DNA of 64,000 bases from Paragordius varius (taxonomy: Eukaryota; Animalia; Nematomorpha): positions 12,338,001 through 12,402,000 of the forward strand of contig OZ176050.1 in NCBI GenBank assembly GCA_964247055.1, written 5' to 3'. The translations under genes were made by a program, and so were the position numbers. A model generated the notes under the pieces. The model had not been told where the DNA came from. It saw only the letters and a program-made list of their open reading frames with translations, and did not search any database. Of the stretch, positions 1,920-64,000 are shown piece after piece; position 1 is the first letter of the stretch, and each line of letters opens with the position of its first letter.

Positions 1920-2742
1920 CAAATATTTACTGCTATCATGTAATATAGAAGCTTTCACTTAGATTTTTAAGCCTAATATACATTAATTTTTCTGATGGAC
2001 CGTGATTAAAAGTCTATAGAAAAAAATGGCGGCGAAAAAGTTTCAGACGGGGAACATTTTTACAATTATACAAAACTTTATACATCATGCGCCTAAAAGT
2101 CTAAAAAATGATAAATTTTGCACAGTATCTTATACACATTTTAAGATTATCATAAACTTTCTAAAATAGTTTATGGTTAAAATGCATCCAAAATTGTAAG
2201 TTGAAAAGAAAATATATTAAAAATACCATAATACCTTTTTCAGCCCTTACGGGTTATTCAAGTTATTTAGACTTTCATGGTAACTGCTCCCATAGGCAAA
2301 TAACAAAATTTGCACATTTTTTAAAAAATTTTAATATCACTAAACTATATCATAGACCACATCCAAAAAACAAATAATATTTTAATTTTTAGATGTTGAT
2401 CAGGAAATGCTTTCAAACGGGTCAGTTTTTTTGAAAAAAACTGGATTTTTTGCGAAATAATTTATAACAATTTGAATCCCACTTCGATGGAAACGGTATA
2501 AAAATAACATATATTATATAGTAACATTTTTCATATAAAAATAGTTTTAATTAAAAGGTTAGTTTTAATATTGGGTAAATTAGTGTAAAAGAACTTTGTA
2601 TTTAACAAAAATTGACGAAAAACGATTATAATAAAATTTTGAAGTGATAGAAATGTTCATCAACATTGAATTTAGGAAAAATTCGATTCATTTTATTATT
2701 AAGTGTACATTAAAAGAAAATATTGATTTAATATTTTTTTAT

Positions 2743-3058
2743 CTCATTTTGTATGTGGTTTCAATAACTAGTTAATAAAACGAATTGAGTATATTTAATT
2801 TCGAATAAATAAAAAGACAAATTTTTGTGTCACTCGAGTTTTTCATTTTCTGATATTAACTATCATTTTAACAGTAAACCTGAAATAAAAATTGTAATTG
2901 CTCATTTTGTATGTGGTTTCAATAACTAGTTAATAAAACGAATTGAGTATATTTAATTTCGAATAAATAAAAAGACAAATTTTTGTGTCACTCGAGTTTT
3001 TCATTTTCTGATATTAACTATCATTTTAACAGTAAACCTGAAATAAAAATTGTAATTG
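2743..3058. repeat. Perfect tandem duplication, 2 x 158 bp
   Basis: 2743-2900 (ctcattttgtatgtgg...attgtaattg) is repeated at 2901-3058 with no differences seen. Confidence 0.95.
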
Positions 3059-5135: not shown

Positions 5136-5253
5136 TTCATCAGCTGATTTGTTTTGGGAAACGACGAAATTTGTAAATATTATATATTTATATATATATA
5201 CATATATATATATAAGAAAATAAAATTTTTTACTTATTAATATTAATTAATTA

Positions 5254-5520
5254 CAGTAAAAATTGGAGAATTATGCGGACTCACAAAACGAAATATCAAA
5301 TATATTTATCTAAAAAACAACCAAACTCTTAATTTTTTAAATATATAGATCATTGTTTAAAACTTTTAAGTATATATTAGAGATTTATAAAGGTAACACA
5401 AGTAATTATATATTTTACAATAAATGATATTTATATGATAAATTAGGGTTTAAAATGTCTTTTGAAAAAAATATTGTCTTAATAATTTTACGTTTTGTCC
5501 GTATATTTCAATTTTTACTG
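5254..5520. mobile_element. MITE family A (Tc1/mariner-type, ~270 bp)
   Basis: TA|CAGTAAAAATTGGAGAATTATGCGGAC ... TTTTGTCCGTATATTTCAATTTTTACTG|TA; imperfect TIRs and TA on both sides. Confidence 0.85.
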
Positions 5521-5606
5521 TAAAATTTTAGGCATTTTGTTTTAATGGTATTATTAATTTTTGTAAAAAATTATATTTAAAAAAAATAATTACCTTATTC
5601 TATTTA

Positions 5607-5917: not shown

Positions 5918-7193
5918 GCTGTTTTTCGCAGTACAGTACTGGGTTTTCTAAAAAAAACCGCGCCTGTACTGCCCTGACTTTTGTACTGTATTTTTGAAAT
6001 TTTTTTTATAAATATGTTTTAATTACCATTTATATATACAAGTTTTGTTTGTAGAATTCGATAGAGTACCCTTAGTTAAAATAAATAAATGGTTTTTTAA
6101 CTGTAAAAAACTATGGCCTTTAATTTTAATATTTTATTTTCTGCTCTAATTATACATAAGTCGGGTTTTGGACCGGTCAAATCGCTTATGAATGCAGCCA
6201 TCGCGAAGTGGCGGAACTACCAATATCAGACTCCAGATTTAGGCCAACCTTTCACTCAGGGCTTCCGCAAAAGGGACCTCAAAAATAAACAAAAAATAAA
6301 TTAATATTTCAGTAATTTTATCTTTTGAAATTCATCTTGTTTCATATAAGTTTCGGCTAAATTAAATTTATTTGAGTTTACTTTAATTATAATATATCAA
6401 ACGGAAAATTTTTATATTTCCGCTTTTTAAAATTCATTATATTTGGTTTCGATATAACCTTTTTTTTCTAGGAATAAAACAATTCTTTAATGTTTTGGGA
6501 TTCCTTAATATTTTGCCTCCCTAAACTTTAATTTTTAGCCAGTTTTTTTTATTCTTTTGTGTATAAACAAATTTACAGACCTATTTTAATTTTGGCATAA
6601 ACACACACATAATAATTTTTTTTATTAATTCTTTTCATTTTAATTTTCTTTTCCGTGCTTTTTCTATAAACAAAATATGGACTACGGAAAAAACACAACT
6701 CACAATAGATACCTTGAAAGCAATAGTAATAGTCAAAAATACAGAAGAAAATTGTGAAGCTTTTTTAGATAAAATTTCGCAAAACCATAAATTATTGAGA
6801 CAAATACATAAATCTGAAAAATATATATATAATTTATTATTTTTAGATATTATTACTATTATAAAAAAATAATTATTCATTAATAATTATGTAACGTCAT
6901 ATACCATTGATTGGGTAGACTCAGAACTATTCAAAGTCGGCATTTGGATAATTTTCTATCCATTCACCTATCTTTTTTTCATCAACGCATAGTTTTACCT
7001 GCTGTCAAATAGTAATTTTTTCTAAAAAGCTATGGAACAGAACTTTCATAAGATGGTGTGTGAATGATTTTATCTGCACGGCAACATCTTATAAAAACCA
7101 GATATATTGTTTCCCTCTATTTTTATTATCATATATTGGTAATTATATTGTTTTTGACAATTATCTTTTTTTAAAACAAATATACCATTATAA

Positions 7194-7769
7194 TCTATAT
7201 ATTTATGAAAATGGAAAGTAGTGGCTTGGTGATCTATTTCCGGGAAACCGGTAGATCCAATCAAATCCAAATGTCGAAAAAATATAATCATTAATGAATG
7301 CCCCGACAATAGCTTCGCCCTTTTTTGAATTAGGCCCCCAGTTCGGGCCTACCCCGTGTAAAAAACGGTTTTTTTGAAAACACAAGTCCACAAAAATCGT
7401 GTCTTAGAGAGAATTTTCTGGAAAACGTGTTGGACCATTCAATTTCAAATATGATTTTTGTTTACTTATTTTCGATTGCGCTGAACATAATCGGCTCGCT
7501 TTTTTAATTAAGGCCCTCTTTTTAGCCGCTCCTCCCGTAAAATGCCATTTTTCCAAAAAAATTCAAAATTAATTGAATCTATTTTTCGCCCAAGTAAACA
7601 ATATATTAGTATGAAAGCACCGTTTTCAATTCCTATGAGATCATAGCTAATAAATCGTGTTTCGAAATAATCCACATATGTGGATCATTATATTGTCCCT
7701 TTTTTCAAATAGCTCCCCCCAGTCCGAAGGACTTCCTCGGGCTGCGTAGCAGCACGAGATTTACGCTAG
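7194..7769 (+). mobile_element. Non-autonomous Helitron, copy 1
   Basis: Inserted between A and T; 5' TCTATATAT; 3' hairpin CTCGGGCTGCGTAGCAGCACGAG followed by ATTTACGCTAG|T; first ~390 bp are shared with 10714-11100. Confidence 0.85.
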
Positions 7770-9075: not shown

Positions 9076-9458
9076 GTAATTTATATAAAAAATAAGCTTT
9101 AGTTTTACCCTAAATATTAAATTAAGACGATATTTTGCAAAATTTTTGTAAAATAAAAATGGCGTCGAAGTAGTTTGAGATGGAACTTTTTTTTCAAAAC
9201 AAAATTTTATCAAGATATTTTGGCATTTTTATATAATATATATCAGGATAGAAGCATAAATTTAAATTGGGACCGTTTCCTTCAGTAGTTTTTTAAAAAT
9301 TTTAATTTAAATTTAGTCTGGGGTATTTAGATACCCCAATTTGAATCGAAGTGTTAAAACTGTTTTTATTCATATTATATAAACTTATTGTTATAAAAAA
9401 CAGACATCTGTCTTCATTAGCTATTGCGTAATCGTTTTAATCAAATTTAGAACATAAA

Positions 9459-9738
9459 CAGTCAAAATTAAAATTATACGGACAAAACTTAAAAATATAA
9501 AGACAAGACCAATATTTTTTCTAACAGACGACGTGCGATACTTTTTAAATCATGACTATTTTTTTGTTTTAAACAGAAAAATATATAATAGAGATGTTAA
9601 TTGGTAACACCATCAATATATATAATTGTTATTAACTTTAGATAAAGGAAAAATAGTTTAAAAAATAGGTTGTCCTTTGAGAAATTGAGAAAAAAAGTTT
9701 TGTCTTTATATTTTAAGTTTTGTTTCAATTTTTACCCT
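9459..9738. mobile_element. MITE family A, degenerate copy
   Basis: CAGTCAAAATTAAAATTATACGGACAAAAC left end; right end and internal ggttgtc motif are eroded. Confidence 0.6.
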
Positions 9739-10200
9739 TTATAATTTGTTTTGCCATTCCCTTTTCAATCTCAAAACGGTGAGTTATTTAAAAAATCAAG
9801 ATTTCAAAAGTATGGTTTGTCTTTTATAAAAAAAAGATTGTCGCAAAATTTAATTTTTTACTATAAATTTCATACTTTGATATGATGGAATTTTTAAAGC
9901 TCCCAAAAATACAACTATAATATTGAGATAATTAAACATTTTGATAATAATTTAATAAATAAAAAATTTATTCGAAGAAATAAATAAAATGCAAAAAAAT
10001 AACACGTGGCACACTTATTAAAATTACAGTACAATTAATATACTAATAAATAAACAATTGATTGATATTTATTTCTAAAATTGGCAATTGATTATTTTTT
10101 TATAAAAACAATTTAAATGAACTATATTTTTTGACTATCCAGTGTTTTTTGTTTAAAGCTAAAATTAGATAAATGCATAGTTTAAAATTTTCAATAAGAT

Positions 10201-10428
10201 ATACTTCAATTCACTCATGATTCAAATTCACCCTAAAATAAAATATATGTTTTTTAAGATTAAACATTACCTATATTTTTTATATTATTAAAAAATGGAA
10301 TTTTGTTTGTAATTAAATTGAAAAAATAACAAACTAAAAGCTATAAAAATATATTTCGTATTAATAAGGAGTTAAATTAGCCCGAAAACACATAATTTAT
10401 TTTTATGGTGAATTTGAATTGTAAATGG
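10201..10428. mobile_element. MITE family B, partial copy
   Basis: ttcaaattcaccctaaaata subterminal motif and ...gtgaatttgaattgtaaatgg|TA end, as in copies at 35582, 52286 and 53320. Confidence 0.7.
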
Positions 10429-10713
10429 TATATTTAATGGAATTCAAAATACAATGCCAATTTCATTATTTACTGCTTTGCTTAGAAAAGCTTATTATCA
10501 AGGTTCTGAGAATTAAAGTCCTGATTGTGTCTTTAAGAAAATTTTTTTGACATTTTAATTTTTAGTGGTAACTTTCAATTAATTAAATATGTCATTTTAA
10601 ATCAGGGGTGACTAACCTTTTTTTCCCGCGGGCTACTTTTTTGCAATAAAATTTCGCGGGCACGTATGAATATTAAGTATTAAAATATATCACTTCAACG
10701 CAAATGATGCTAA

Positions 10714-11706
10714 TCTACATATTTATAAAAATGGAAAATGCTGGCTTTGTGATCTGTTTCCGGAAAACCGGTAGACCCATTCAAATCTAAATGTCGAAAA
10801 AATATAATCATTTATGAATGCCCCGACAATAGCTTCGCCCTTTTTTGAATAGGCCCCCAGTTCGGGCCCATCCCGTGTAAAAAACGCGTTTTTTTTGAAA
10901 AAACAAGTCCACAAAAATCGTGTCCTTGAGACAATTTTCCGGAGAACGTGTTGGATCATTTATTTTCAAATATTATATTTGTTTACTTATTTTCGATTGC
11001 GCCGAACATAGTCGTCTCGCTTTTTTAATTTAGGCCCTCTTTTTAACCGCTCCCCCCGTAAAATGCCATTTTTTTTAAAAAAAGTCCATAAAAATAATTT
11101 TTTGATTCTATTTTTCGACTAAAGTATGAGACCGTAAAAATTCAATAAGATTCCACGTATTCCCTGTTAAAAGGCAAAAGTTTTCAAGCGTTTCTTTGAT
11201 GATAGCTACTGAGTAAGGCCCTACCCGCGAAAAACTGAACCTCATATCGAAATAGCGTGCTTTTGTGGCTGAATTTCAGACCTCTCAGACCTGAGTTCAA
11301 TAGCTGCTCAAAATAATACCCGTAAAAAGTCAAATATTTTAGTCGAGCGGATTTTTTGAATTAGCCGTAAATAAGCCCTTTACTCCCTAAAAAATGCGCT
11401 ATCATTGAACTATTATTCAGTTTTGAAGCCATTCTTTCAAAAACTATTAGGAATGAACGCTGATTCTAGGTATAAAGGAAATTTTTTTTATCTAACTACA
11501 TTTTTATAATGGCCTCTGGGTAGGGGGCTACTTGCCTACAACTGCGCCATCATATCGATGCAGCATGCCTTTGGAGCCAAATTTCAGAATACGAGACTAC
11601 GTGAATCATTTTAAAACTTCGTGCCGAATAACAAAATTGCTTATAAAATCAAAAATGCCCCCCCCCCCCCCAGAAATCCGAAGGACTTCCTCGAGATTTA
11701 CGCTAG
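10714..11706 (+). mobile_element. Non-autonomous Helitron, copy 2
   Basis: A|TCTACATAT ... CCGAAGGACTTCCTCGAGATTTACGCTAG|T; same termini as copy 1, different and longer interior, 17 bp of the terminal hairpin missing. Confidence 0.8.
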
Positions 11707-19900: not shown

Positions 19901-22900
19901 ACAAAGTAAGAATTAAACTATAAAAAAATAGATTTGAAACAATTTATAGACATCAATCCAATAACTTTAACCAAGGGTGCTCAACACAAATGACATTTCG
20001 GGCCGCATTCAAAAAATATATGGGCAATAATAAATATTTAATTAATATCCAAAAAGCTATAATTATTACGAGAACAAAATATAAAACTCATTATTTTACC
20101 ATTTGCCAGTTTGGTGCCTAAGTTTGAAATGACTCATTCAGAAATAGGGCAAGCAATATTAATTTGAATTAGATTTAATTTATAAATAGTAATATTTTTG
20201 CGAATTATGGAATTTCTTTGGCAATTTTCCAAATTGTTTATGGGCCTCACAAAATATCTAGGCACCCCTGTCTTAAACTATTTATCTTTATTATATGTTA
20301 CCCACTCTTTATTTCAGAACCAATTCTGTATTGGGGTGATCGTAAAACGTATCGCATTGAAAGCATCAATTTCGATGGTTCTGGTCGACAAGTGCTCATT
20401 GATACTAAACCCCAGGACAATCTATCATTTGATAGCGAGGATGATGGATTAAGTCCACCAGCCACTAATATGGATTCATTTAATGATAATAGCTATGATA
20501 ACTCTGCTCAAAGCAGCCGAATTAGTAAACAACGTCAAACTAAGGGCAGCACTCGAATGATTCAACCCTATTCGATGGCCCTTTATCAAAGTCGCGTTTT
20601 TTGGGCAGATTGGGGCACAGGGGCCATCCTCAAATCTTTATCTTTTTATCACACTGGAAAGTATCAAAGGAATGATGTTATAAGCAAATATTTGCAGGAT
20701 TATGATAAACCTAAATCGTTAGTTATGCTCTCAACTTCACCTACAAGTAAATTTATAAGTTTTGTTTTTTAGGTCTAACATATATGGTGGAAAATTAGTT
20801 TTTTTATAAATGTGTGTAAATTTATTAAATTATAATTTACATTGTAAATTTTTGTGTTACTACCAGCATTTTTTGGATTAAAATTCTGATCTTTTTTCGG
20901 GAAACTCTTCATATAATATTTAATTTGTACATCATTCCAACGTATTTATATTTTTCTTTCCATACCAGGTAAGAAACAATTGCCCTATTATCCCTGTTTC
21001 GACAGTAACAAATGGTGGACTAATACATTAAATTACAATAAAAATAATGATAAGAAGAATAAAGGTAATTTATGTAGCCAACTATGTTTACCAATACCCA
21101 AAGATAGTATAACACAAAGTTATGTGTCATCATCATCTCAAACGGCCTTTAGAGACGAAACTCAAATATCAGATTGGTGGAAAGATTTTCATACTGGTCA
21201 CGTATGCATGTGTCGCGATAATATTGGTTTATAATTTGCGGATATATATATATATATATATCAAATCTTAAAAGTGATAGTGCTATTTGGAAACTAATTT
21301 CTGGTTTTTAGGATGTAAGCAACAAAATGCGATTTTGATAGTTTTACAACCAACCTGGTTTTGACTAAAAAAAACAAAACACTGTTTTTTAGCATCTGGA
21401 ATTTTGGGTAGTTTTCACAAGAGCTTCTAAATTTTTGAAAATATCATTTTAGCATAAAACTTTACTCATTAATTTTGTGTATGCGGTATCATTAAGTTTA
21501 CTTCCGGCTCTTATTTCAATAGCAATTCCAGTTTTAATTTTAAAAAATTAAGAACCAATTCGGTTTCGATTTCTCTTTTTTTGACTTGATCCCTGATTTA
21601 AATCTATAGATTAATGCTTTGTTTAATTAATAATTTTAGATAAAACATCTTCAGATTCTGGATTATGTATACGAACTAGCCAATCCGGGAAACAGTTGAC
21701 ATCCAAATCAAACATTCAACATTCATCATCGCTCATAGTTTATGATAGAGCATTAGGTCAATTAGTTTATGTACGTGAGGGGCAATTCAATCAACCCTTA
21801 GTCAGCGTTGGTTCACAATCTATCGTAATGTCTTTCGATTGGGATCCGGTACAACAAATTTTATATTGGCTAGAATATGTGGGCCATACATTAGGGAAAC
21901 GAAAGTCACCTTCGGCAGCGTTATTGGAAAATTCTCATTCCATCGATTTCTCATCTTTCACCTCATTTTTAGGGGGGACATCGAATGGAATAAATTCAAA
22001 CATACAGTAATAATTTAAAGTAACCAGACAAAACGTAAAATATAAAAGACATTTTTTATGAAAGACAACCATACTATTTTAAAGCTTGATTTTTCATCCT
22101 AAAGTATTTAATTAGAATAATCAATTATAAAATTAAGCGTAATAACAATTTGAATTTACATATTTTGTTCCAAAGTGATGAGTTATATCTATGAAAAATA
22201 GGATTGTAAAATATAGTTTAGTTGTCTTTGAAATGCCATTTAGTTTTTACTTTTTTGTTATATTTCGTTTTTACTGTACCTTTCTATAGCATTAACGGGA
22301 GTAATGTCTTAATGAATGATGAACACGCCATAACAAGTTATATTGCATTGAATTTTGTAACGCTTGAAACCATCAATGAGAATAATGCAAACAATAAAAA
22401 TAGCAATGATGTTGGGACTCTTCCTCAGTCAACCGTGGTTATAAAGGCTTCGTACGTTAAAACTATACGGACTTTTAATCCAATAAGTAAGGAATTACTA
22501 GGCAAATTTTAAAAATTTAATAAAATGTCTTATTTGTTTAGGTGTATTTTTTAAGGATAAGCTTGGTATCAAGAATGTTTTTTTAAAATACAAGCTTCTC
22601 CTTCAAAAATTAAAATATTTTAAAAAATATTCAAAATACGTCATTTTAAACATGAAAAAAAAAACGTTTTGCAATCAAATCTGTGGTGTAATAGGGTATT
22701 AATATTATAAGCCAAAATCCTGAACGTTTAAAATTTAGATTATTGTTTTGTTATCATCAGCATTTTTTCCCACTAAAATAACATATATTTTTTTTCAGTA
22801 ACCAAACCGGAAAGTATGGCATTTAATCCATTATCACGTTTGCTATATTATACGGATTCAGTTCGGCGTACTATTTCAGTCCTAAGCCTTAATGGCCACT

Positions 22901-25900
22901 CCGAAAGAATCTTGATTAAACGACCGACGGCTTACAAACCCAAGCACATTCAGATAGATTACATGGCTGGGTATGTATTAAATATTTATAATTCCTATAT
23001 TTATAGTTTTAATCGATTAAATTAGAAGTAAGATTAATAATTAGTAAATTCTTAAGCATAATAAAAAGTATATAGTAATGTTTCCTGTTATTTAAACATA
23101 GTATTTTAACATGAGATATATCATATATTCATTACGCTGTAAAGTTTGATGTTTTGGGTTGAAGTGTCCGAATTCGATAAACAATTTTTTTCTGCCTGGA
23201 CAGATGGGAGTAACATTAAAACGTTGGCTCAATCAACAACTACCACAATAAGTTCCTTGCATATCTATCCACCTGGTAAAACTTGATTTCGGATAATATT
23301 AAACAATATGTTTAGGCAATATATATATATATTTTTACGTACAAAATTTTTTTTAAAAAGTCTTAGTTTTAACCTATAAATTAATCAATTTTGCGTAATG
23401 TATATATAGATAGATAGTGCAATTTTCAATTAATTCATCTCATTATACACATACAAATACACACACCAATAAACTAAAATTTTCTTTTTATTATATCGAT
23501 TTTTTGTACATTTATCCAGAAAAATTGGTGATTTGGACTGATGCAGATTATTCCATTGTAGAAGCTATAAATTATGATGGGGGTGAACGCAGACCTCTGC
23601 ACATTTATCAACCGTCTCAAACGAAATCTTTGGCTGAACAAAACACAGCTAATGACCCGACATTGGCTAATTCAATCTTTAACATTGCATTTATGGGGGG
23701 AAATCGATTTGCTGTTTTATCTAAGGGTAGTTCACATATTTTCACCTATTCAGATATGTTACATACCATAGTGCCGTCTGGTAAGTTACCACCATCCCCC
23801 GATTATTTTGAACCACACGCCTTAATTATACCAGAAACTTTAAAGTTGCCCACACTTATGTTAACAATCAATGATCAAGACACAAAAACTGTAAAAGATG
23901 AGTTGGAAAGCAAAAATCCCTGTCTTAAACCCGATAAGAATGATAATGATGTAAAAATCACTAAATATGTCCCAACTTGTAGTCATTTTTGTTTAGTTAT
24001 ACCCTTAATATTTCCATCTTCTTCCTCTGATGGGCTTGCTAAAATAACCCGCGTTTGTGAATGTCCGAATGGACTTACTAAAGTAACCCTACCTCCCCAA
24101 AATGGTAAAAATAGCCAAAGTAATATTGGTTTGACTCAAATATTTCGTGAAGTGTGCGTTTTTGATCGTATTTCACCCAACCAAGTTAATAAGCAACAAA
24201 AAACACTCATAGATTATTACAATTTGCATGGACACACAAATGATGATGCAAAAACATCGCTGATTGCGACAGAACAAAATAATAATAATATTAACAATAT
24301 TATGAATAATAATAATGGATTGGTCAAAAATGTGGAGTATCTTTTAAGGGATGAAATGTTGTATGAATCCAGTAAATACTCTTTATATATTTGTATTTAT
24401 AATATTTGATTAAAATTAAGCATTTCAAATATATAATTTAATTTTTGAATAAAAATGTTATTTTTCTTTGCATACAAATTATTTTGATAGCTCTAATTTC
24501 TTTTAAGCCATCTATAGTTCATTACATTTCCTGATAATTGTAAGATATAACAGTAAATATATCCTAACTAACAAACCTGCTTAGAATAGATCATTTTATT
24601 ATTAATTGTTTTTTTAAAATCGTAATTCAATGTTTATCTGGATAAAATTAACTTATTTTATTTTTTTTATTAGAAGTTATTATAAATGGTGTTACATTAT
24701 ATAATTATTCTATTAAGTTAAGAAAGAATCCCAATTGTTAATTGATTATTTAAAAGTTTTTATTATTTTTAACTCTTTGAATGAAGCAACTGTGGGATTT
24801 TTAATAAATATTTACAGTAAAATATGTAATTATACCGACGAATTTTTAAACTAACAGACATAATTTTTTTTATAATAGACAGAGTGTTAAAATCAAAAGA
24901 TTAAAATTTTTAATTTGCGGACAAATTTTTTTTATACGGACATATCCGAAATATAATAGAGTAAGAGGAGCTTTCATCTATAATATTGATAAATAATAAC
25001 CCTCTGAATTCTAGTCGGCTAAATGTTTACTATGCATTTTATAAGAAGCTTTACAACTATAACATAGCTATTGATATTCACCAACTTAAGAATAAACCAT
25101 TTTTGATTTAATATTAACTAATATATTTAATGAATAGGATTTAATAAATCTCGCATTTTATTAAAATTGAGGAAAATATTATTTCTTTTGCATTATTAAC
25201 ACCAATCATAATTGTAAAATTTAAAATAACCTTATTATAATTGTATTCATTTTAAAGAAACTTCTTTACTATTGAAAAATAATAATAATCCAATTTTTAA
25301 TCTTATTAATCTTATTTTTACAATGTTTCCAATCTTATAATAAATTTTAATCGAAAATATCAATAGTCTAATGGGCTTCTACACTGAGTGTATTTTTAGA
25401 TTATATAACATATCAACTCTCTTTATTATATTGTTAGGTGGGACAACTTTCAATTAACGACAAGATGGGACTCTTCTTAATTTTAAACATCTACCGTATA
25501 AGCTCAATAAGCAGACGATTAAATACTAATCGTCTGCTTTTAATACTAATTATAACTGCAATATAATGTAATAGAGACAATAATTTATTAATGTAATATT
25601 TATATTAAAATAACATCAATATAAATCAATTGTAAAAAAATAAATAATCGTGGAAAAAAATAAAAACACTGGTAAATGCCTTAAAAAATATCTATGTCCG
25701 AAAACAATTACTGATTAACCCTATCATCGCAATAAAATAGAACGGGAACAAGTTTTAAAGTTTTTTTACATGATTGTAATGAAGAGATTTCCAACTATTA
25801 AATATATGCATGCGGTTGAAATATAAAATATTTGATGATGATTTATAAATTAATATTTTATTCATCCCAAACATTATAAATAATGTCTATCCACCGTATT

Positions 25901-28900
25901 ATCTAAATAAGAAAATGATATTAGCTATGAAAAAATAGATCCAATTTAAATGACTCACAACAAAAATCATAGGAATTTTCAGGTAATAAATTTAAATTTA
26001 TCTATATGTTCATAATATTTACTTAAATCCTTTTACAAAATATTTTAGAGACTTCTTTTATATTTTTATCCATATTTAAATCTTTCTTATTTAGGGCTCG
26101 TAATTTGTGTTTTTCATGGAAAATACACTCAATAGGGTTTAATTGAGGTGAATATGGTGGCAAAAAAATCAAATTTTCGAATTCCTTATTTCGAGAATAA
26201 CGATGAATAGGGGCATTATCTAAAATTTTATAGGATGATGAAAGTATTATTTTAAACATTCCTGTAAAAAATGATATATATCATCCCCATTGTATGGGTC
26301 AGATTTATATTCATATCATTCCGTTTATTCCAACCATAGCCAAATAGTTTATATTTTTACCTCTTGGCTTACATTTAATTGTAGGAAATTCTCCCTTTTT
26401 ACACCAATAATATAGATAAAGACTGTAATCATTGTTTCCAGTCTCATCCATATAATATATGTCGCTGTGCAAAAACTGTAAAACTTCCCATGCATAAGTA
26501 TACCTTTGCTCTATTATTTCTATTTTATTGCCATTTATAGGCTCAATCTGAGCCTGTTTACGGATAAAAGAATATTTTTTTAAGGCATTTATACAATGTA
26601 GATTTTGAGATTTTTAATGAATAAGGAATATTATCTAAAATATCATCAATTGTTATATTATTATTTTCTTTTAAAATATTTTCGATGGCTTCCTTTAATT
26701 CACAATCATCAAATTTTGGCTTGCGGCCACGGATGTGAAGGCCGACGTTCAATCGCCTGCGATATTTATAAATTGTTGATCTGGACATTTTTAAAATGTT
26801 TATATTGTCTGTCATGGTATTATTCGAAGTGGGCGGATTACTGAAAAGGCTCTTAGCAATTTCATTTTTTTCATTTGTCCAACATCCTCTGCCTTAACCA
26901 AATATTCACAAATAATTTATTATTTTAGATAGTTGAATAAACAATTCACATATTTAACAGATAATTAATTATATTATTTTATTAAATTTTTTAAAAGTTA
27001 TTGCTATAATCGGAAAAATGCAACTAGAATACCTTTATTAAAATAAAGAGGAAGGCATATCAATTTACTTATGTAAATATATTACATGAATTTGTGAAAT
27101 AAAATATCTAGACTATCCCCACTTGAAATAATTGTTTTAAATAACGTCGATCTCAAACCATGATATAAGTTTTAAAAATATATGTAAGGAAACTTAAATC
27201 ATAACATTTATGTCGCTTAAAAACACAAAAAGATACTAGAGCTAGCACAATGGTATTATTGAATATAATATAATTTGAAATGTATAAACGTTTTCTTTGA
27301 CGAATCGTATCTTCTTGGTTGTTGTCTGAACATACAGGCGAAGATGGCGATGACGGTGAGAATGATGGTGAGCGTATAATTGAACGATTTTCTGCACAAT
27401 CATCATAGAATTCTAAAGGTGAAATAAAATTTTACCATAGGTGTGATCCATCAATAATTACTATAGGCTGAATAAAGAGTATTAAATATAGATATTATTT
27501 TAAAAGAAAATAATAATATAACAATTGATGATATTTTAGATAATATTCCTTATTCATAAAAATCTCAAAATCTACATTTTATAAATGCCTTAAAAATATT
27601 CTTTTGTCCGTAAACAGACTCAGATTGAGCCTATAAATTGCAATAAAATAGAAATAATAGAGCATAGGTATACTTATGCATGGGAAGTTTTACAGTTTTT
27701 GCACAGCGACATATATTATATGGATGAGACTGGAATCAATGATTACAGTCTTTATCTATATTGTTGTTGTAAAAAGGGAGAGATTCCTACGATTAAACGT
27801 AAGTCAAGAGGTAAAAATATAAACTATTTGGCTATGATCGGAATAAACTGAATCATAAAATATGAATATAAATCCGACCCATACAATGGGGATGATATAT
27901 ATCATTTTTTACAGGAATGTTTTAAAATAATACCTTCACCATCCTATAAAATTTTAGATAATGCCCCTATTCATCGTTATTCTCGAAATAAGGAATTCGA
28001 AAATTTAATTTTTTTGCCACCATATTCACCTCAACCCTATTGAGTGTATTTTCCATGATTTTAAACACAAATTACGAGCCCTAAATGAGAAAGATTTAAA
28101 TATGGATAAAAATATAAAAGAAGTCTCGAAAATATTTTGTAATAAGGATTTAAGTAAATATTATGAACATATAGATGGAATATTAAATTATGTTTGTTTA
28201 AAAAAAATAAATTTATTACCTGAAAATTCCTATGATTTTTGTTGTGAGTAATTTAAGTTGGATCTATTTTTTCATAGCTTATATCATTTTCTTATTTAGA
28301 TAATACGGTGTATAGACATAATTTATAATGTTTGGGATGATTAAAATATTATTTTATAAATCATCATCAAATATTTTATATTTCAACCGCAGGAATATAT
28401 TTAATAGTTGGAAATCTCTTCATTACAATCATATAAAAAAACTGTAAAACTCGTTTCCGTTCTAAAATTTATTGCGATCGATAGGGTTAATCAGTAATTG
28501 TTTTCGGACATAGATATTTTTTAAGGCAATTACCAGTGTTCTTATTTTTTTTACGATTATTTATTTACAATTGATTTATATTGATGTTATTTTAATATAA
28601 ATATTATATTAATAAATTATTGTCTCTACTACATTATATTGCAGTTATAATTAGTATTAAAAGCAGATGATTAGTATTTAATCGTCTGCTTATTGAGCTT
28701 ATACGGTAGATGTTTAAAATTAAGAAGAGTCCCATCTTGTCGTTAATTGAAAGTTGTCCCACCAAACAATATAGAGTTGATATGTTATATAATCTAAAAA
28801 TATAGTCAGTGTTGAAGCCCATTAGACTATTGATATTTTCGATATAAGATTGGAAACATTGTAAAAATAAGATTAATAAGATGAAAAATTGGATTATTAT

Positions 28901-31900
28901 TACTTTTCAATAGTAAAGAAGTTTCTTTAAAATGAATACAGTTATAATAAGGTTTTTTTAAATTTTATATTTTACAATTAGATGACAGTATGATTGGTGT
29001 TAATAATGCAAAAGAAATAATATTTTGCCTTATTTTTAGTAAAATGCGTTAAATCCTATTCATTTAATATATTAGTTAATATTAAATCAAAAATGGTTTA
29101 TTTTTAAGTCGGTGAATATCAAATGCTATGTTATAGTTTTAAAGCTTCTTATAAAATGCATAGTAAACATTTAGCCGACTAGATTCATAGGGTTATTATT
29201 TATCAATATTATAGATGAAAGCTCCTCTTACCCTATTATATTTCGGATATGTCCGTATAAAAAAAAATTTGTCCGTATAAAAAAAATTTGTCCGTATAAA
29301 AAAAATTTGTTCGCAAATTAAAAATTTTAATCTTTTGATTTTAACACTCTGTCTGTTATAAAAAAATTATGTCTGTTCGTTTAAAAATTCGTCCGAATAA
29401 TTACATATTTTACTGTAAGTTTCCAATATATCAAACTATAATTAGTATATATTTCACGCTTTTCGATTCCAACTAATTTAGCTGACGAAAAATCAATAAG
29501 ATGACATTAGGGACGTGAATTTTGGCGCATTAAACTTATTTTCTCAATAAAATCTGGATAAAACTAAAATATACACTTTACTAATTTTTTAAAAATAAAA
29601 AAAATTAAAAACCCTACTTAACTAATTTTTTTAGTTTCTTCTATTTCATCGCAATATAGTTAAAAACGATGCAATATTCTTCTTCACTGATCCCTTCATC
29701 AATGGTCTTTACTTTGTGAATGCTGCAAATCCTGCCATGTTTACGAATTTGTTTGAAAGTTTACCCTTGAATCCTGGTTCTCCCAGTCAGTTTTTTACTG
29801 TTTCACCCATAACTAATACATTTAACCCCAATGATAAAAATGAAAATGAGAGCAGTAATTATGCAAACACAGTCTTTCAACAAAAATTACATGAGCTATA
29901 TTTTGGAAGGTATGTCGATTTATTTCCTACCGCGACTTCAGAATCATCAAATCCATCAGTTAATGTTAATAATAATAATAATTTCCGAGGATTCGATACG
30001 AACGATATAAGTCCAATCGATGCCGATTTTGATGTGAAAGAGAACAAAATGTACTTCATAGATAGCAAGGATAATTCAATTAAATTTATCACTTTTTTCA
30101 ATAAATCCAACATAATAACCAAGAATGTGGATGATATTAATAATAAGAATAAAACTGATTCTGCGCAAAATATGTTGTGGGATCTTTTTATAAGTCATTA
30201 TGGAGCAAGTAATGGGTTAGATATGGGGACCGTGGCTAAATTTGATATATCAAGTAAAAATATTTTGTTTAACAAAGTTTTGTGAAACAAAATTTAGTTA
30301 ACGGTAAATAATAATCAGGTTGTTTTTACTTCTGTTGAAACTATTGCATTATACTTTAAGAAAATATGAATTTTTATGAACATAAATTATTTTTTATGAA
30401 TTAATTAAGTGCGAATTCAAAAACAAAAAATATATCATATATTTTAAAATATAGCACCCATTTTAGAGGAAGTTAGTATATTTCATAAAATCTAAAAAGT
30501 TTAATTCAAATCCCTTGTATTTGTAAATTTTACAGGTAGTATCGTGAAATTATGCGTCGTTCCACAACTGAACCTTATTTATTTGTACGATTTTACGAAT
30601 CAAGTCATAAAAGTTATGACGAAAGATGGACGGTTAATTAAAGATATCTATCAGGACAAAAAAACTTTTGTTACTTCCATCACAGTCGATATTTTTCAGG
30701 GGTATTATATTATTCATATTTAAAAGGGTTTGATTTGCAATTTTTAACATACGAGATATTTAAAATATTATATATGAATTTAACTTTTGTGGGATAAAAT
30801 TTTTTTTTTAATTTTTCACATAAATAAAACATATATTATTTAATCGCTTGACTTTTTAAAATAATTAAACATATATATAAATTGAGTTTACATTTTTATA
30901 TCCCTGCTGTCTCTAATGAATTTAAAGTCAGACTAAAATATTAACCCTATATAAAATTTTTATTAATTTCACATAATCTAATGATAAAATAATTGACATT
31001 TATGAAATAAGATATCTGTATTGGTCTGAATGGTCCAAGGAGGGAAAAGGACGTATAATGCGATCCGAATTAGATGGAACTAAAGCAAAAATTATAATTG
31101 ATGATCCAATAATCCAATTACCGACAAATTTGGTTCTAGATGCAGATGGTATGATTTGTAAATTTATTCATTATCAAAAAAATATAACTCAGTTATTTTT
31201 TTGGAACTTTCTAGAAATATAAAAAAGATTCTAGGATCGGTATAAGTAACGCAGTTTCAAGCGGTTATAAAAAATTGATTTTTTTGGTGGAAATTTTTAC
31301 AGGAATATTAGCTCTTTTATATGTTGTTTTCTTAAAATAATTATATTTTTTTGATATACACCAAAATTGGCACACAATATATTTATATCTATATTTTTTG
31401 GCTATCAAATTGTATCAAAATAGCTAGCTGTATATTAAAAATATATAACCGAAATCGGAACATTTGACCAAAAAATATGAAATCGAAACCAAAGATGTTT
31501 TCGTAAAAAATTTAGAGCCGGAATCAAAAACAGTTCCATGTCAACGAATCATAATAAACAATCAATTATAAACAAAATTCTTTTTTGGAAAAAATATTGG
31601 GGCAACGCCATATAAGAAAAATAAAAGCATAAAAATACGCTCAACAGAGCATCATTTTTGTCCTATAAACTTTGTTATTCACTGACTAAAATTTAATATA
31701 ATTGTAATTAATGATAAAGGACTAATTTTAAAGCCAACAATACGAAATTACCCGATATTTTTCGAAGTTTTTTGCTAAATTTTGTGTCAATAATAAAAAT
31801 GTTAGATTTAATTTTATTTTTAATGTCTAACAATTATTTCCAGCTTGCCAAACATTTTTAAGTATATTCACATCTAAAGAATATTTTATGAGCGACAGTG

Positions 31901-34900
31901 TTAATAAAATATTCAAACTTATTATATTAAAATTATTGGATAAGCTTTTCAAAAATTAAAAATTGGGACAAAATAACATTTTTAAAGCCAATATTTAAAT
32001 AATATTCGGATTTTTTCGGAGATTTTAACATGTAAATTTTTTTTAAACCATAATAACGCTTTTACTAAATATCACATTTCAAGTATTTAATTTTGACTAT
32101 GAATACGTGTATATTGTGTAAAATTTACTATTTTGCCTTATAGAAAAAGGACAGCTGTTTGTATCGATTAAGTTTTATGGAAATCACAAATATGTAATAT
32201 TATTATCTAGGGTTTTTAAATTTAATATATTATCGATCGAATTATACCATAACCATAAATTTGTACCATATACCCACAAACTTAAACCATTTTTTAAATT
32301 TGAAATTATATTTATAGAACTCTTTTGAAAAATACTATGAACCGGAACCGAAGACATACTTAGTGTAAAACGTTTGAATTAATCTTTTATGGATATAATG
32401 CATCAAATCAATCAATTACATTTTAAAAATTTGAGATATCAATCAATTGATTTAATATGTGTGTCATTCGATACGTTCTTTTTATATTATGGCCATATCG
32501 ATGACATATAAATCCATTGTCATTTAATTTCAATATTTTATTAGATAATCTATTGTATTGGATTGATGAATTAACCATTTATGTGAGTAATAATGTGGAT
32601 GGTAAAAATGTTCAGGCCCTACTTAAAACAGTTGAATATGCAAATCAGCCAACCTCTTTAGTTGTTACACCTAAAACTCTGTATTGGTCAGATGGGCAAA
32701 GCCTTATTTATGCGCTCGATAAATCATATTTGGGTTATTTTTATGTAGATTAAAAAAAATTTTCCATTGGCAAATTAGTATATAATTTTTATTTGTTATA
32801 TGCTTTAAAAATAATAATTTCACATATTATGCCAATGTTTTATTTTTTTGATACCCTCTTTTTATAATGTTCACTCTGAATTTTCTTTCATGCTCTATTC
32901 TCTTTAAACTATGAAAATATTTTGAAACTATGAACAAAAGAAATTTAGAAGCTTAAATTCTCTTTATATAGGGTATAATGCCCAAAACGATAACCCATAT
33001 GAGACCTTAAAAAGCCCCGTATATATAAAATATACCCAACCAACCGATGTAAATGACGAAACTATAAGTGGACAGGACACAACAGTCGATGAGCAATTGG
33101 ATGAAAATGAATCTAGTAAATAAATTTTAAAAGATAATATTTCTATAGGTTTTTCCATTTCAAAAAAATAATTTTAATTTATAAAAAAAGAAAATATGCA
33201 TTAAATTAATACTCTTTATTGCATTAGAAATACCTGCAGGAAGCCGAACGATCCAAATTGGTAAAGAGATAAAAATACACAAGATAAATGCCGCAATCAT
33301 AAAATTAACTAATCTCAAATATTTCAATGTAACGCATTGGAGCACTCAAATCTCGAAATCCGATAACTCGGATAAGAAGCATGGTTTTAAACAGGTTGCA
33401 TTTTTTCTAGAAAATTGAAACAATAAGAGATCAGTTTTGTTTGAGAATGAATATATTATGTATATTTTATAATACCATCAATTTAAATTCAGATTTATAA
33501 AGCTTTTTTTTACGAAAATTGCTAATATTCTAAAAAATTTTTTACAAAAAAATTTGCATTTGATATGTTATTTATAGCTATTTGCCTATGAAAGTTGTGA
33601 AGCCAATACCGGAGATCATAACCAACAACATTCTTCAGTTAAAACCTATGGAGGGTGTAGTGATTTTTGTTTCCCGAAATCGTATGCCCTTCAAAACAAG
33701 CTTTATTCTTATAGAAACCATAATAAAGAAGCTATTAAAAGTGAATCTAGGAATACAAAGAAAACCCGATTACTTCGGTATTTGCTTAAAAGTATGGGGC
33801 GAAGCTGTCAATGTGCCCAACGTATAGGCCATTTATCCATAGATCTGAAAAGACAAAATATTCTAAGTTCTGGTTTTTCTGGCTTAACAGGAAACAACTT
33901 CTTGGATACTTATTTACAGAAGTACATAAATAAGACTGAGAACAATAACACTAATATAAATTATGGTAAAATTAACAATCAAATGGTTCAAATGATCCGT
34001 GAAACTCTAACATATTATACTTTTGGTAATTTTGCGCCTTATTAAATTTAATTTTAACGAAACTAACTAAAATTTGGATTTTTATAAAATAAATTTTGTC
34101 AAATGCTCATAGTAAGTAATTTACATTTTACAGCAAAAATGTAATTTTTTAGTAACCCAGTGTTTTTACATCATTTATTATAATTATAAATTTTAGATCA
34201 AATTGAAATCCCAGCACATCTTTCCAGTCTTTATCACAAATTAATTGGTAAAAATGATGGCGACCAAGACAAAGATAATCAAATTGGATCAACTAATGTG
34301 CTCTTAGACGATGGGCTAACTTGTAGTGCTTCTACACTTTGTCCATTGTCCGGATTTAATGAGGAGGAATTACAGTGATACTTTAAATTACAAAAAATAA
34401 AAGACAAAGCAGTCATACTTTTTCTACGCCTAAATTTTTTTATTGATTTGGGTTGCAAAATGAGGTGGAGAGATGTAAATTGGTAAAATACCAAACTATA
34501 TTATATTTTACAAATGTAATCCATAAACTTTATAAAAAAATCAAAGTTTAAAAATGATGGTTGTCTTTATACATAACAAATGTATTTGTTTGTTTTTTAA
34601 ATTTTAACTTTATTTAAATTTTTATAATTTTAATTTTGATTGTTAGATTGAACCCTAAACTCGTTGAAAGCATAAAAATTTTAAACCATGGAAACGGAGT
34701 CGAATTCGGAAAAGCTACATATGAATGCAAGACCGGTTATCGAGATACAAATCAAGAGACAATTGAAAGAGAATGTATTATAAACGAAAATGAACAAGGC
34801 CATTGGATGGGAAAATTATTGGATTGTAGGCGTAAGAATTCTTCCAATACAACATATTTTAATAAAATTAACCAATTTTTTTCATTATGGATGTTAATGA

Positions 34901-35142: not shown

Positions 35143-35866
35143 CAATAAATCTGGCCAAATAAAAATTTTATGTTTTAAACTTAGCATTATCTAGAATATA
35201 TTTTATTAGCAATAACTTGTAAAAACCTACTAACTCATCACTCAAACGCCATAAAAATGGTTTATTGTGAAGGGAATACCGTTAATTCAACCTGTGAACT
35301 TGATTGTATGAATAAGAGCTCCATTTACATCAGTGGTGATCGAAAGCGAAAATGTCTGCCAAACGGAGAATGGTCAGGTGAAGCCCTGAAATGTCAAAAT
35401 TTATTGGGCGCTAACGAAAATACAGATACTGGTAAGTTTCACAATCAAGAAATTTATTTCGAATTTAAACGACTAATGATTGGCTTTTATGATATATCTA
35501 ACGATAAGCAAGTGTAATTAATATTATTTAAATCACATAAGATTTGAAATTTAAATGGTTTATATTTTGTTAATAAATATACCATTTACAGTTCAAATTC
35601 ATCCTTGAACAATTCAAATTCACCCTAAAATAAATTGTGTGTTTTTAAGATTAAAAATTACTTTTATTTTATAATATTTTTAAAATATGAAATTCTGGTT
35701 AAATATAATACATTGCCGAAAACTATCTATGTCGTATAATGATGAGTTATATTATCCCGAAAACACATAATTTATTTTTAGGATGAATTTGAATTGTTTA
35801 ATGGTGTTTTTAAATTGTTTGAGGGTGAATTTGAATTGTTCGAAAATGAATCATAATTATAAATGG

Positions 35867-38900: not shown

Positions 38901-41900
38901 CGCGATTCAATTTAACCAAACGAATCCGTAATTATACGTGTGAAACTGGACACGTAAAGGTCCATGGTGCTTGTGGTATCATTTTTATCTATTTAATTAT
39001 TTATAAATGTTATAAAAACATGGAAAAAAATTATGTTTTAGCAAAATTATAAGCTTTAACCTATAAATTTGTTGTTTTTTTTTCAATTTTCTTGGTCTTG
39101 AATATCATGGGCCTGCTGAATAAAAACAAGCACCTACTGGGTAGTAGGTGTTTGATAGTATGTACCAGTTTTTGAAAAAACATTGAATAAAAATAGGTAC
39201 TTACTATCATGTACGTACTTAAGTCTTTGGTATGTGTAAAATGTTTATTTTCATTTTGTTTTTTGTTAGTTTTCGATTTCATTCATAAAATGCGTTTAAA
39301 AATCTATAAAGAAAATTAGAAAGTGATTATCTCCCCATATTTTTATATAATGCATTTATTAATACACATTTATTCATAAATACACAAATAATAAATCAAA
39401 ATAATGTTTGAACAATTGAATCTCGTGTCATTTTGCCAGCCTTAAGTATTTGGGTTAGATCAATATTTGCTTCACAATCCTCCACATATTCAATATCAAA
39501 ATATGAATTACTATCAAAATCTGTTAAGGGTTCGTTAATATATTTGGATACATTATGTAATATGGAACATGTTAATATAAGTTTTGGGATTCGTTCTAGA
39601 CTTAAACGAATTTCGTTACTAGGTATGGGAAATCGGGTCTTCATCTGACCGAAAACCCGCGCTCGATAATTCTTTTTTCAAAACAATGTAATTTATTGAA
39701 TTTTTTCTCGTTATCGATCATCGTATTTTTGAAGGGGGTTAGGAGCCAGGATGATAGAATAATGGATATCCATTATGACCTAACAAACAAATTTCATTTT
39801 TTTGCACATATATGACTGCACAATCGTGTTTCGCCATATCCTTGTATCATGTACAGATCCTAGCCATTGTGCATCCACGGATGTAATTTCTTCATTGGCA
39901 TTACATGCAAATTGTACATTGAGGGTGCATCGACCCTTTCTATTTAATATAGGCCTCAACATTTTGTTTAGGTCTTAATATTTCAAAGTATGAACAATCA
40001 ATGCAACCAATAGCAGTTGGCATTCTATATTTGGATAGCCATAATTTATTCGCCATATTAAGCTCTTCAAATGACTTGGGAATTTTTACCAAATGAGATT
40101 TTGATACTATTTCGTCCAACTTTAGGTATTTTTTTTGCCTATTGTAAAACTATGAACATTAAAATATCCCGGATCTCCAAGAAATCTTAACACAAAATCT
40201 AAATTTCTGATATTATAAATACCTCCATTTGCATCCTGGGAGTTAGTTTCCTTAAAGATATATTTAATTTTTAACCAAAATATGAAAAGGTCATTTTATC
40301 TTAGTCATAACTCGAATTTGAATAAATCTCTGGTTTTTTATATAGAAAATAGCTTCATTCAAAAATATTCACACAAATATATAAAATTTAAATGTTTAAA
40401 AAATAAAATTAAGGTCATTATAAAGTATATAAACTCAAATATTTTACACACTAATGAAATAATTGAGGAAAATGATATGATTGTGGATATTCTTGAAAAA
40501 AAACCAATATTTTTTAACAAAAGTAATAATCTCTGCAAATTGAACTCACAAAGCTTAAAATAAAGAAGGAAAAAAATTATTATTAATAATAAAACAAATA
40601 ATATTTAATTAATATATTAATAAGTTATATATATATATGAATGATGTAATAAAAAAACATTTATCTTAGAAATTTTATAAAAATATAACCGATATTATTT
40701 TAAGTGAAAAAATAATTGTTTAAAATGTTGCCATTTACCAGCTTAAAAAAAACCAGTAAGTACTAGGTAAAATTTGTAAAAAGACAATTTTTATTCAATG
40801 ATATTTGTCAGTAAATACTGGTAAACATAGTACGTACTGGATAGTAAAAGCAATATATTTTTTTATTCAATACATAGCTAGTATATACTGGAAAAAACCT
40901 AGTTTTTAGTATATACTAGCTTTTATTCAGCAGGCCCCATATATTATAAATATATTCCGGTTATAATTTACGAAGTATTTGAAGCCTTTTACCTATGAAT
41001 TTGTTGTTTTTTTCAATTTTCTCGGTCTTAAATATCATACATTATAAATATATTTAGGTTATGTTTTACGAAATATTTGTGGTTTTTATAGCATGAAATA
41101 ATTTTTATCATTTCCCCGTAATATATGGGATGTGGTTAGTTTGAATTAAATAAATATATACGTAATATTTTATTTTGTTTGTTAAAACAAACTATAGCTA
41201 GTTGTCCGGATGGAACGTATAAATCTGCCCGTGAAAACAAATGCATAATTTGTCCCTCGGGTTATTACCAAGATAGCTATGGACAAACGCACTGTAAAAA
41301 GTGTCATTTTCACATTAATCGACATGGAAAGGCATCACCTATCGGATCAAAACATTGTAATGGTTTATTATGGGCTGGGTATCAGGGTAGGTTATTTTGT
41401 TAAATACTAAAAAAAACCCTAACTAGATATTCAATTTTTGGAGCTTTTTTGTGTTGAAATTTATACATTTTTTGCAACTTATTAGGTATAGTTACATGGA
41501 AAGATGAAGTATTGATCTTCTTAGCTGTAATCATTTGTATAGCTTTCGGAGTCGTAATGTACAATAAATGGAGAAGCTACAATAAAGGGTATTTTACGCA
41601 ATTATTTCCCTTGGTTTTTAGCTTATTCATTTATGTTTAAATGTTCATTTGAATTTTTTTGGAATTCGTCAATTGTATATAATCACCAAAACCGAAAACA
41701 TATTATCGTAATAAAGGTGCAAATAATATAATGCCATATGCCCTAACAAATTTTATATACACCTCTGAGCTAAGATATTAATTATATTTTGTTTATCCAA
41801 AATTATGCTCAAAATTCTGCGAATGGTATTTCTGCTTAGGCTTCAATTATCCGATTTTTTCTTATTTTTCACCAAAAACTATATAAATATGAAAATAGTC

Positions 41901-63385: not shown

Positions 63386-63649
63386 ACAGGGGTGAATTTA
63401 CCTGAAATGTATTTATACGGACAAAATCTAAAAATATAAAGACAAATATTTATCTAAAAGACAACCATACTTTTTAAAACTTTAATCTTTAAAATTTAAT
63501 ATTTATGTTATTGATATTATATCTATTTCAGACTTTACCACTTTAAACAATGAGTTATATTGAAATAAATCAAGAATTTGGTTGTCTTTTAGAAAAAAAT
63601 ATTTGTCTTTCTTATTTGCGTTTTGTCCGTATAATTTCAGTTTTTATTG
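63386..63649. mobile_element. MITE family A
   Basis: TTATACGGACAAAATC near the left end, ggttgtctttt internally, TTTTGTCCGTATAATTTCAGTTTTTATTG|TA at the right end. Confidence 0.75.
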
Positions 63650-64000
63650 TAACATTCTTTAATGAAGCCTAAAATTTCAGATGGCTATCAAGTTTATTAT
63701 GAAGACCATTAAAATTATAAAAAATATAAGAAAAACGGATGTATATTAAATTTTCAATATTATTGCCGTGTATGTAATCAAGTTTTGAAATGTTTTATAA
63801 AAATTAATGCTGAGAAATAGAGATACTTAAACAAATCTAATCTCTCATCCATTCCTTACTGAATTTAATTAAAAATTTTATGAATCTGGGAAAATAGAAA
63901 AAATTAAGGATAAGCACCAACATTTTTGCCAAAAAATTACGAAATTCAATTATTATTATATATTATATATAATTTATTTATGTTCGTTCGATAAATTATA

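Follow-up and report, generated by a model that had tools for sequence, protein, structure and literature searches.

A Tc1/IS630-type MITE within a coding exon of a Paragordius varius receptor-like gene as a candidate GT-AG intron

A TA-flanked MITE lies within a coding exon of a large, apparently receptor-like gene of Paragordius varius, in the 64,000-nucleotide stretch of DNA that we analyzed as a whole (positions 12,338,001 to 12,402,000 of contig OZ176050.1, forward strand; referred to below as the window). An earlier note, made from the letters of this DNA, had proposed that such an element entered the exon and became an intron. Our reading is that a Tc1/IS630-type MITE landed long ago at a TA within this exon and would now be removed by the ordinary spliceosome as a newly gained intron of 283 nt (22007-22289). 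Bases 3 and 4 of the MITE's terminal repeat, a GT, would be the donor, the far T-rich end of the element would serve as the branch site and as part of the pyrimidine tract, and the first host AG, 11 nt past the target-site duplication, would be the acceptor. The outcome would be a histidine in place of PFYS in a propeller blade. We give this whole account, the old exon insertion together with ordinary spliceosomal removal as 22007-22289, a probability of about one-half. The splicing itself, the use of these two sites, and the spliceosome as the agent are all things that we infer from the DNA sequence. The coordinates of the features are collected in Table 1.

Table 1. Features of the interrupted exon, the MITE family, and the host gene, in positions of the window
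Feature	Position	Strand	Details
MITE, Tc1/IS630-type	22005..22276	+	Non-coding; 272 bp; CAGT...ACTG termini; GC 0.217
TA target-site duplication	Left copy 22003..22004; right copy 22277..22278	.	
Left terminal inverted repeat region	22005..22070	+	Bases 3-4 (22007-22008), proposed GT donor
Right terminal inverted repeat region	22211..22276	+	T-rich end TTTTTAC at 22268-22274; A at 22273
Proposed new GT-AG intron	22007..22289	+	283 nt; predicted from sequence
Interrupted exon, upstream part	21640..22006	+	Putative YWTD-type blade, ...ILYWLEYVGH...GINSNI plus CA
Interrupted exon, downstream part	22290..22486	+	INGSNVLMNDEH...TFNPI
Next ordinary intron	22487..22798	+	GTAAGG...TTTTCAG
Next exon	22799..22974	+	Ldl_recept_b, E 0.0016
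Tc1/IS630-like foldback element in next large intron	24813..29417	.	4.6 kb; DDE_3 and HTH_Tnp_IS630 ORF pieces
Second predicted intron in host gene, on decayed copy of same MITE family	34375..34646	+	TA/CA/GT geometry; in frame
Sibling MITE copies	~5252-5524, 46475-46738, 55969-56251	.	BLAST, MAFFT
Further family copies	~9457-9737, ~34371-34646, 63405-63651		BLAST, MAFFT

The sequence at 22003-22290 reads TA-CAGTAATAA...TTTTTACTG-TA, which confirmed that the MITE at 22005-22276 has a TA on each side. Its ends are CAGTAA... and ...TTACTG, and the two arms could be aligned, with indels, across about 60 nt. Folded as RNA, the MITE forms a hairpin that pairs both ends, UACAGUAA with UUACUGUA (MFE of -50.1 kcal/mol; z of -2.65).

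Using BLAST and MAFFT, we identified at least 7 copies of this MITE family in the window. Each is about 270 bp long, the copies are mutually 60 to 70% alike, and they have in common the TACAGTAAAA... ends and a AAAGACAA subterminal motif. The TA duplication was also present at the siblings 5252-5524, 46475-46738, and 55969-56251. Over the left half of the MITE, the depth of DNA contigs was 15 to 70 times in excess, the surplus coming from other copies. The intron at 30254-30535 was considered as another member of the family and rejected, as it had no convincing similarity. The foldback element in the next large intron contains ORF pieces that match DDE_3 (E of 8e-8) and HTH_Tnp_IS630, and its ends can be aligned to those of the MITE (TACAGTAAAA..TTATAC.GAC..AGACA..TTTTTTT..AGACA). 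Because its termini match those of the MITE family, this element is likely the source or the mobilizer of the family. The label “Tc1-type MITE” from the earlier note thus finds support in the TA duplication, in the CAGT termini, and in the ends held in common with a transposase element. The copies are also short, non-coding, and numerous, and their CAGT ends are inverted repeats, as is expected of Tc1/mariner (IS630) MITEs.

The host gene lies on the plus strand and extends from about 15 kb to 42.7 kb of the window. Its exons encode Ldl_recept_b repeats (E of 1e-4, 1.6e-3, and 1.5e-5), Sushi domains (E of 6e-9 and 2e-7), and an Ephrin_rec_like domain (E of 4e-8), together with EGF-like cysteine patterns and a hydrophobic segment. 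These features suggest a large receptor-like gene with YWTD propellers, EGF, Sushi, and Ephrin_rec_like domains, and a transmembrane segment. A Pfam search of the interrupted exon gave no match; in our reading, this exon would encode a YWTD-type blade (ILYWLE...INGS). We looked for an orthologue in two ways. A phmmer search of 1.84 billion representatives with the 121-aa exon half upstream of the MITE returned only two spurious repeat-protein matches, and a word-index search with the 331-aa downstream block, which is blind to proteins more than 1.75 times the length of the query, returned nothing. A long orthologue beyond the size range of the word-index search may exist.

Upstream of the MITE, the reading frame is open for 126 codons, a run with a chance probability of about 6e-5 (stop trinucleotides make up 7.4% of the window). 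This frame ends in ...GINSNI and then passes into the element, where translation of the unspliced terminal repeat confirmed a CAG TAA stop, the TAA being at 22008-22010. Downstream of the MITE, the frame is PFYSINGSNVLMNDEH.... Deletion of 22005-22276 together with one TA left a single continuous frame, ...GINSNI-PFYS-INGS..., as the earlier note had stated. The proposed splice sites were found as well. A GT preceded by CA is present two bases into the terminal repeat (22007), and the earliest AG after the MITE (22288-22289) belongs to the host exon, 11 nt past the duplication. An in silico splice of 22007-22289 preserved the frame as ...NSNI-H-INGS..., with H for PFYS. At the far end of the MITE, TTTTTAC has an A that lies 16 nt ahead of this AG and is followed by pyrimidines, and this part of the right repeat could act as a branch site and as part of a pyrimidine tract.

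Near the MITE, the only GT-AG pairs that keep the frame are 22007 with 22289 and 22007 with 22301. The more distant host donors 21905 and 21920 are likewise frame-compatible with the AG at 22289; the pair 22007/22289 is the sole frame-keeping option to 22289 close to the MITE, not across the whole exon. We scored these sites with a small splice-site matrix built from 15 putative, unverified introns of the same gene. Donor 22007 reached 1.5 bits, compared to 2.1 to 10.9 for the leave-one-out donors, and 36% of GTs were equal or better. Acceptor 22289 scored -0.6, with 47% of AGs equal or better, while acceptor 22301 scored -12.5. The matrix gives support in neither direction for the candidate sites. 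By eye, the donors of the host gene are AT-rich and varied (GTAAAT, GTAAAA, GTAATT, and GTTTAT).

Single DNA contigs from two samples, X1 (955 nt, 21634-22584) and X3 (777 nt, 21812-22584), span the MITE and both flanks, and their depth across the MITE was equal to that of the flanks. X1 may be the source sample of the assembly. The sole difference between these contigs and the window here was a 4-nt TGAT indel within the MITE. In three DNA runs, we found no contig joining 22004 to 22279, that is, no empty site. The insertion is fixed in the sampled animals. With respect to age, this copy is 28% off the leave-one-out majority of its six siblings, and all copies fall between 20 and 28%; an age based on so few copies is overestimated. 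From this divergence, the MITE family is clearly not young, and the copy is judged to be old because it is about 28% diverged from its siblings.

We then compared the window with the MITE-bearing X1 and X3 haplotypes. The list of differences is partial and includes at least 25 in exons, of which 21 of 25 are at codon position 3 and 17 of 25 are synonymous. For the two exons that follow the MITE, 13 differences are listed; 12 of them are at position 3 (the binomial chance of at least 12 of 13 at one codon position is about 2e-5) and 11 of the 13 are synonymous, the two replacements being M>I and I>V. In the exon at 22799-22974, position 3 accounts for 10 of the 11 listed differences. Because both haplotypes bear the MITE, this selection acted after the insertion, and purifying selection on the gene with the MITE in place is well supported. 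In a neutral simulation, the fraction of cases with both exon halves open was 4% at d = 0.1 and 1% or less at d >= 0.15. The exon halves on both sides of the MITE are probably still translated. Since the insertion is fixed and the gene is under purifying selection, the mRNA almost certainly loses the MITE without any shift of the frame. Spliceosomal splicing at 22006^22290 would be the most likely route.

A different spliceosomal route is unlikely. Donor 21905 or 21920 could be joined to the AG at 22289, acceptor 22301 could be used, or the exon at 21640-22486 could be skipped. All of these routes keep the frame; skipping does so because the exon without the intron is 564 nt, a multiple of 3. 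The comparison of propeller blades does not separate the variants that these routes predict. In BLOSUM scoring against six other blades, the restored blade scored -3.8, the 22007 splice -2.7, and the 21905 splice -4.0, compared to a blade-versus-blade mean of -3.2. All three values lie in the range found between the blades themselves, and no variant scored significantly above shuffled versions of itself (P of 0.07 to 0.14). An argument that the restored NIPFYSING best fits the blade strand before the [DN]G of the six other blades was withdrawn. What speaks against these routes is the sequence that they would discard, as 21905-22004 is still open and exon-like in GC (0.39) even though the MITE is old, and both exon halves are open where a neutral sequence would give P <= 0.01 at d >= 0.15. 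At +3, the host donors GTCACC and GTTATT carry a C or a T, and acceptor 22301 has the poor score given above. A 53-nt intron at 21920-21972 was also tried and rejected; in our reading, it shifts the frame, and no acceptor downstream restores it.

The preferred reading, in which the donor lies within the terminal repeat, also applies in silico elsewhere in the host gene, where a second predicted intron sits on a more decayed member of this MITE family (element at 34373-34642). At this copy, the exon ends in ...TTA CA, with GT at bases 3 and 4 of the repeat, and taking the earliest AG after the element as the acceptor gives an in-frame EEEL-Q-LNPK. The intron site splits a Sushi domain between the first and second cysteines. 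If the second TA has mutated to TT, exact excision of this copy would give EEEL-R-LNPK. Were a canonical intron not required, the chance of the first AG giving an in-frame outcome at two independent copies would be about 1/9. The hairpin of the second copy has decayed (z of -0.93) and its flanking exons are intact. Because hairpin stability has been lost and the exons are intact nonetheless, the sequence favors the spliceosome at the second copy at least.

These observations bear on SOS splicing, a process known from Tc1, Tc3, and Tc4 of C. elegans and, in human cells, from HSMAR2 (Zhao et al. 2025, PMC12779559). SOS splicing is triggered by paired inverted repeats, and its junctions are variable, mostly non-GU-AG, and near the repeats (PMC12779559). 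Applied to this gene, a spliceosome-independent system of AKAP17A, CAAP1, and RTCB would excise the MITE at varying sites in or near its repeats, and enough of the products would be in frame for gene function. The MITE qualifies as a substrate because its RNA hairpin pairs its two ends: it is an exonic DNA transposon with base-pairing ends (z of -2.65), which is what SOS splicing acts on. Pairing of the ITRs is all that is needed, so that non-autonomous relics are excised too (PMC12779559), and the canonical splice sites at the MITE are not strong. However, SOS splicing is imprecise and frequently out of frame, and according to its authors, exonic insertions tend to be purged (PMC12779559), whereas this insertion is old and fixed. 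Both candidate MITE introns of the gene also have a canonical in-frame GT-AG pair, the 1/9 chance above applying if none was needed, and the second copy has intact exons without significant hairpin stability. We therefore consider SOS splicing a rather improbable account of how the gene has kept its function.

The two remaining alternatives are far less probable. The claim of the earlier note that the target was a coding exon and not an older intron is supported by three sequence features: a lack of host donors over the nearest 85 nt, a flank that is in frame and free of stops, and the exon-like GC of that flank. Neither a GT nor a GC donor of the host occurs within 85 nt upstream of the MITE, and the nearest GT is at 21920. 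The 100 nt ahead of the MITE have a GC of 0.39, compared to means of 0.362 for exon windows and 0.226 for intron windows, and no 100-nt intron window of the host gene reached 0.39. It is very improbable that the MITE was merely received by an older in-frame intron, one running from 21905 or 21920 to 22289 and measuring about 96 to 111 nt before the insertion. Such pairs are in frame, and the 21905 version would give, in our reading, the canonical 11-residue YWxE-NG spacing of three other blades. However, the would-be older intron has a length divisible by 3 and contains no stop (joint chance of about 0.03), its GC is unmatched by intron windows, and its donors are poor. Just as improbable is that the insertion broke the gene, so that the protein stops at the repeat TAA, where the read-through frame does end (22008-22010), and the exons farther down are either dead or part of another transcript; those exons are open for thousands of bases in 73% A+T DNA, keep their domain matches, and differ between haplotypes almost entirely by synonymous third-position changes.

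Removal of Tc1 from C. elegans mRNAs has long been known, from an earlier study cited in PMC12779559. The insertion described here is like those of Tc1, Tc3, and Tc4 in C. elegans in its TA target, CAGT termini, inverted repeats, and exonic position. In C. elegans, excision sites in or adjoining the repeats leave a small indel in the coding sequence, and the same is predicted here. The C. elegans cases are recent mutant or engineered alleles with heterogeneous, mostly non-GU-AG junctions. In contrast, the P. varius MITE is non-autonomous, old, and fixed, it occurs in a wild genome, and it has a clean, in-frame GT-AG solution in silico. The earlier Tc1 work was reportedly that of Rushforth and Anderson in 1996. 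In maize, Ds and dSpm are spliced from exons using donors in the transposon ends and acceptors nearby, with partial gene function; these are plant cases and recent mutant alleles.

The earlier note had likened the insertion to Introners, which are known from Micromonas and Aureococcus and were surveyed in 3,325 genomes (Gozashti et al. 2022, bioRxiv 10.1101/2022.06.06.494994; reviewed in PMC11282704). In algae, fungi, and other organisms, Introners resemble MITEs and carry one of the two splice sites with them, the second being co-opted (PMC11282704). Among the 3,325 genomes surveyed, animals with Introners came from only two groups (bioRxiv 10.1101/2022.06.06.494994). The likeness predicted here is that of a MITE-like element in an exon, with one splice site of its own and the other from host or duplicated sequence. 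This geometry, with the element giving one splice site and the host the other, is present in silico at two copies. The acceptor would come from the host exon 11 nt past the duplication, however, and not from the duplication itself. Because it lies in the host exon beyond the duplication, coding sequence would be lost. Introners are also many similar introns in unrelated genes, whereas here there are two in silico cases in one gene, and most MITE copies in the window are not whole introns. The scale of an Introner family was not borne out in the window, where 2 of the 13 intact TACAGTRA termini adjoin a long frame, both in this one gene.

The tunicate Fritillaria borealis has introns that are thought to be MITE-derived (Henriet et al. 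2019, as summarized in PMC11282704). Like P. varius, Fritillaria is an animal, and many of its introns are believed to have been seeded by MITEs. The Fritillaria introns are mostly AG-AC or AG-AT and need an adapted spliceosome, whereas the candidate here is GT-AG. The phenomenon is less novel than the earlier note had implied, as Tc1 removal from mRNA, animal Introners, and MITE-derived introns have already been reported. We regard the case as a natural, fixed example of an already known kind of event and not as a new kind.

A wider reading, which we hold only tentatively, is that the MITE family repeatedly made GT-AG introns from exon insertions, the CA/GT of the terminal repeat being a donor at hand, with SOS-type excision perhaps buffering the new ones until their repeats decay and the spliceosome assumes the task. 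Under such a scheme, the young copy (hairpin z of -2.65) and the old one (z of -0.93) in one gene would represent two stages. If true, an animal phylum not yet known for such elements would have a system akin to Introners, with Tc1/IS630-type DNA transposons as its basis. Tc1/IS630 is the most widespread superfamily of animal DNA transposons.

For annotation, gene finders will truncate or split the host gene unless the MITE is modeled as an intron. The birth of spliceosomal introns in animals is still poorly documented. If our reading is correct, this old, fixed insertion would show a DNA transposon that became an intron naturally in an animal, within an exon that is still under selection, and the MITE belongs to a superfamily with experimentally known RNA-level excision in C. 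elegans.

A decayed copy of the Tc1/IS630-type MITE family underlies a second candidate intron of the receptor-like gene, at 34371-34647. This candidate has the same donor geometry, TA|CA|GT (target, first repeat bases, proposed donor), as the MITE at 22005-22276. Its predicted junction is in frame and nearly seamless, and it would interrupt a Sushi domain between cysteines 1 and 2. At two sibling copies, the T-rich terminus ...TTTTTACTG|TA is followed 13 to 16 nt on by an AG that starts a long frame. MITE ends may often provide the pyrimidine tracts of acceptors.

One large intron of the gene contains a foldback whose ends match the termini of the MITE family. This foldback consists of two mutually inverted Tc1/IS630-like transposase copies, with DDE_3 and HTH_Tnp_IS630 pieces, and its arms are 94 to 98% complementary. 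The ORF pieces matching DDE_Tnp_4 in another intron are a PIF/Harbinger-type transposase relic. Introns in the gene region also hold two copies of a second MITE-like family (~250 bp, with inverted arms and internal AATTCAAATTCACCCT repeats), which is unrelated to the first. Elsewhere in the window are direct repeats of ~370 nt (7191-7561 and 10711-11082; 3.5 kb apart, 83 to 89% alike) and a tandem duplication of 158 nt at 2710-3025.

Features of the receptor-like gene and the repeat families
Feature	Position	Strand	Remark
N/S/D-rich low-complexity insertions	20329-20746, 21905-22004, 22330-22430		propeller blades
Second MITE-like family	10182-10443, 35574-35839, 52265-52569, 53312-53560
Sibling MITE, T-rich end near frame-opening AG	55969-56262		AG 56262 (frame on +)
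Sibling MITE, T-rich end near frame-opening AG	46458-46477		AG ~46458 (frame on -)
Tc1/IS630-like foldback	24813-29417		4.6 kb; large intron of MITE-bearing gene
DDE_Tnp_4-matching ORF pieces	39399-40149	-	E 3e-10, 1e-4; another intron

The blades of this gene have long N/S/D-rich insertions in those loops that typical YWTD repeats keep short. Across 20300-24406, the X1 and X3 haplotypes (from two DNA runs whose contigs cross the MITE and both flanks) diverge from the window by at most ~2.4%, with 32 differences in 1,307 nt at 22586-23900. Inside the MITE, both haplotypes carry a TGAT at 22050 that is absent from the window, through polymorphism or through a minor discrepancy of the assembly. 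Nearly all of the listed exonic differences across 20300-24406 fall at codon third positions. This bias gives a clean signal of purifying selection, readable from contigs alone.
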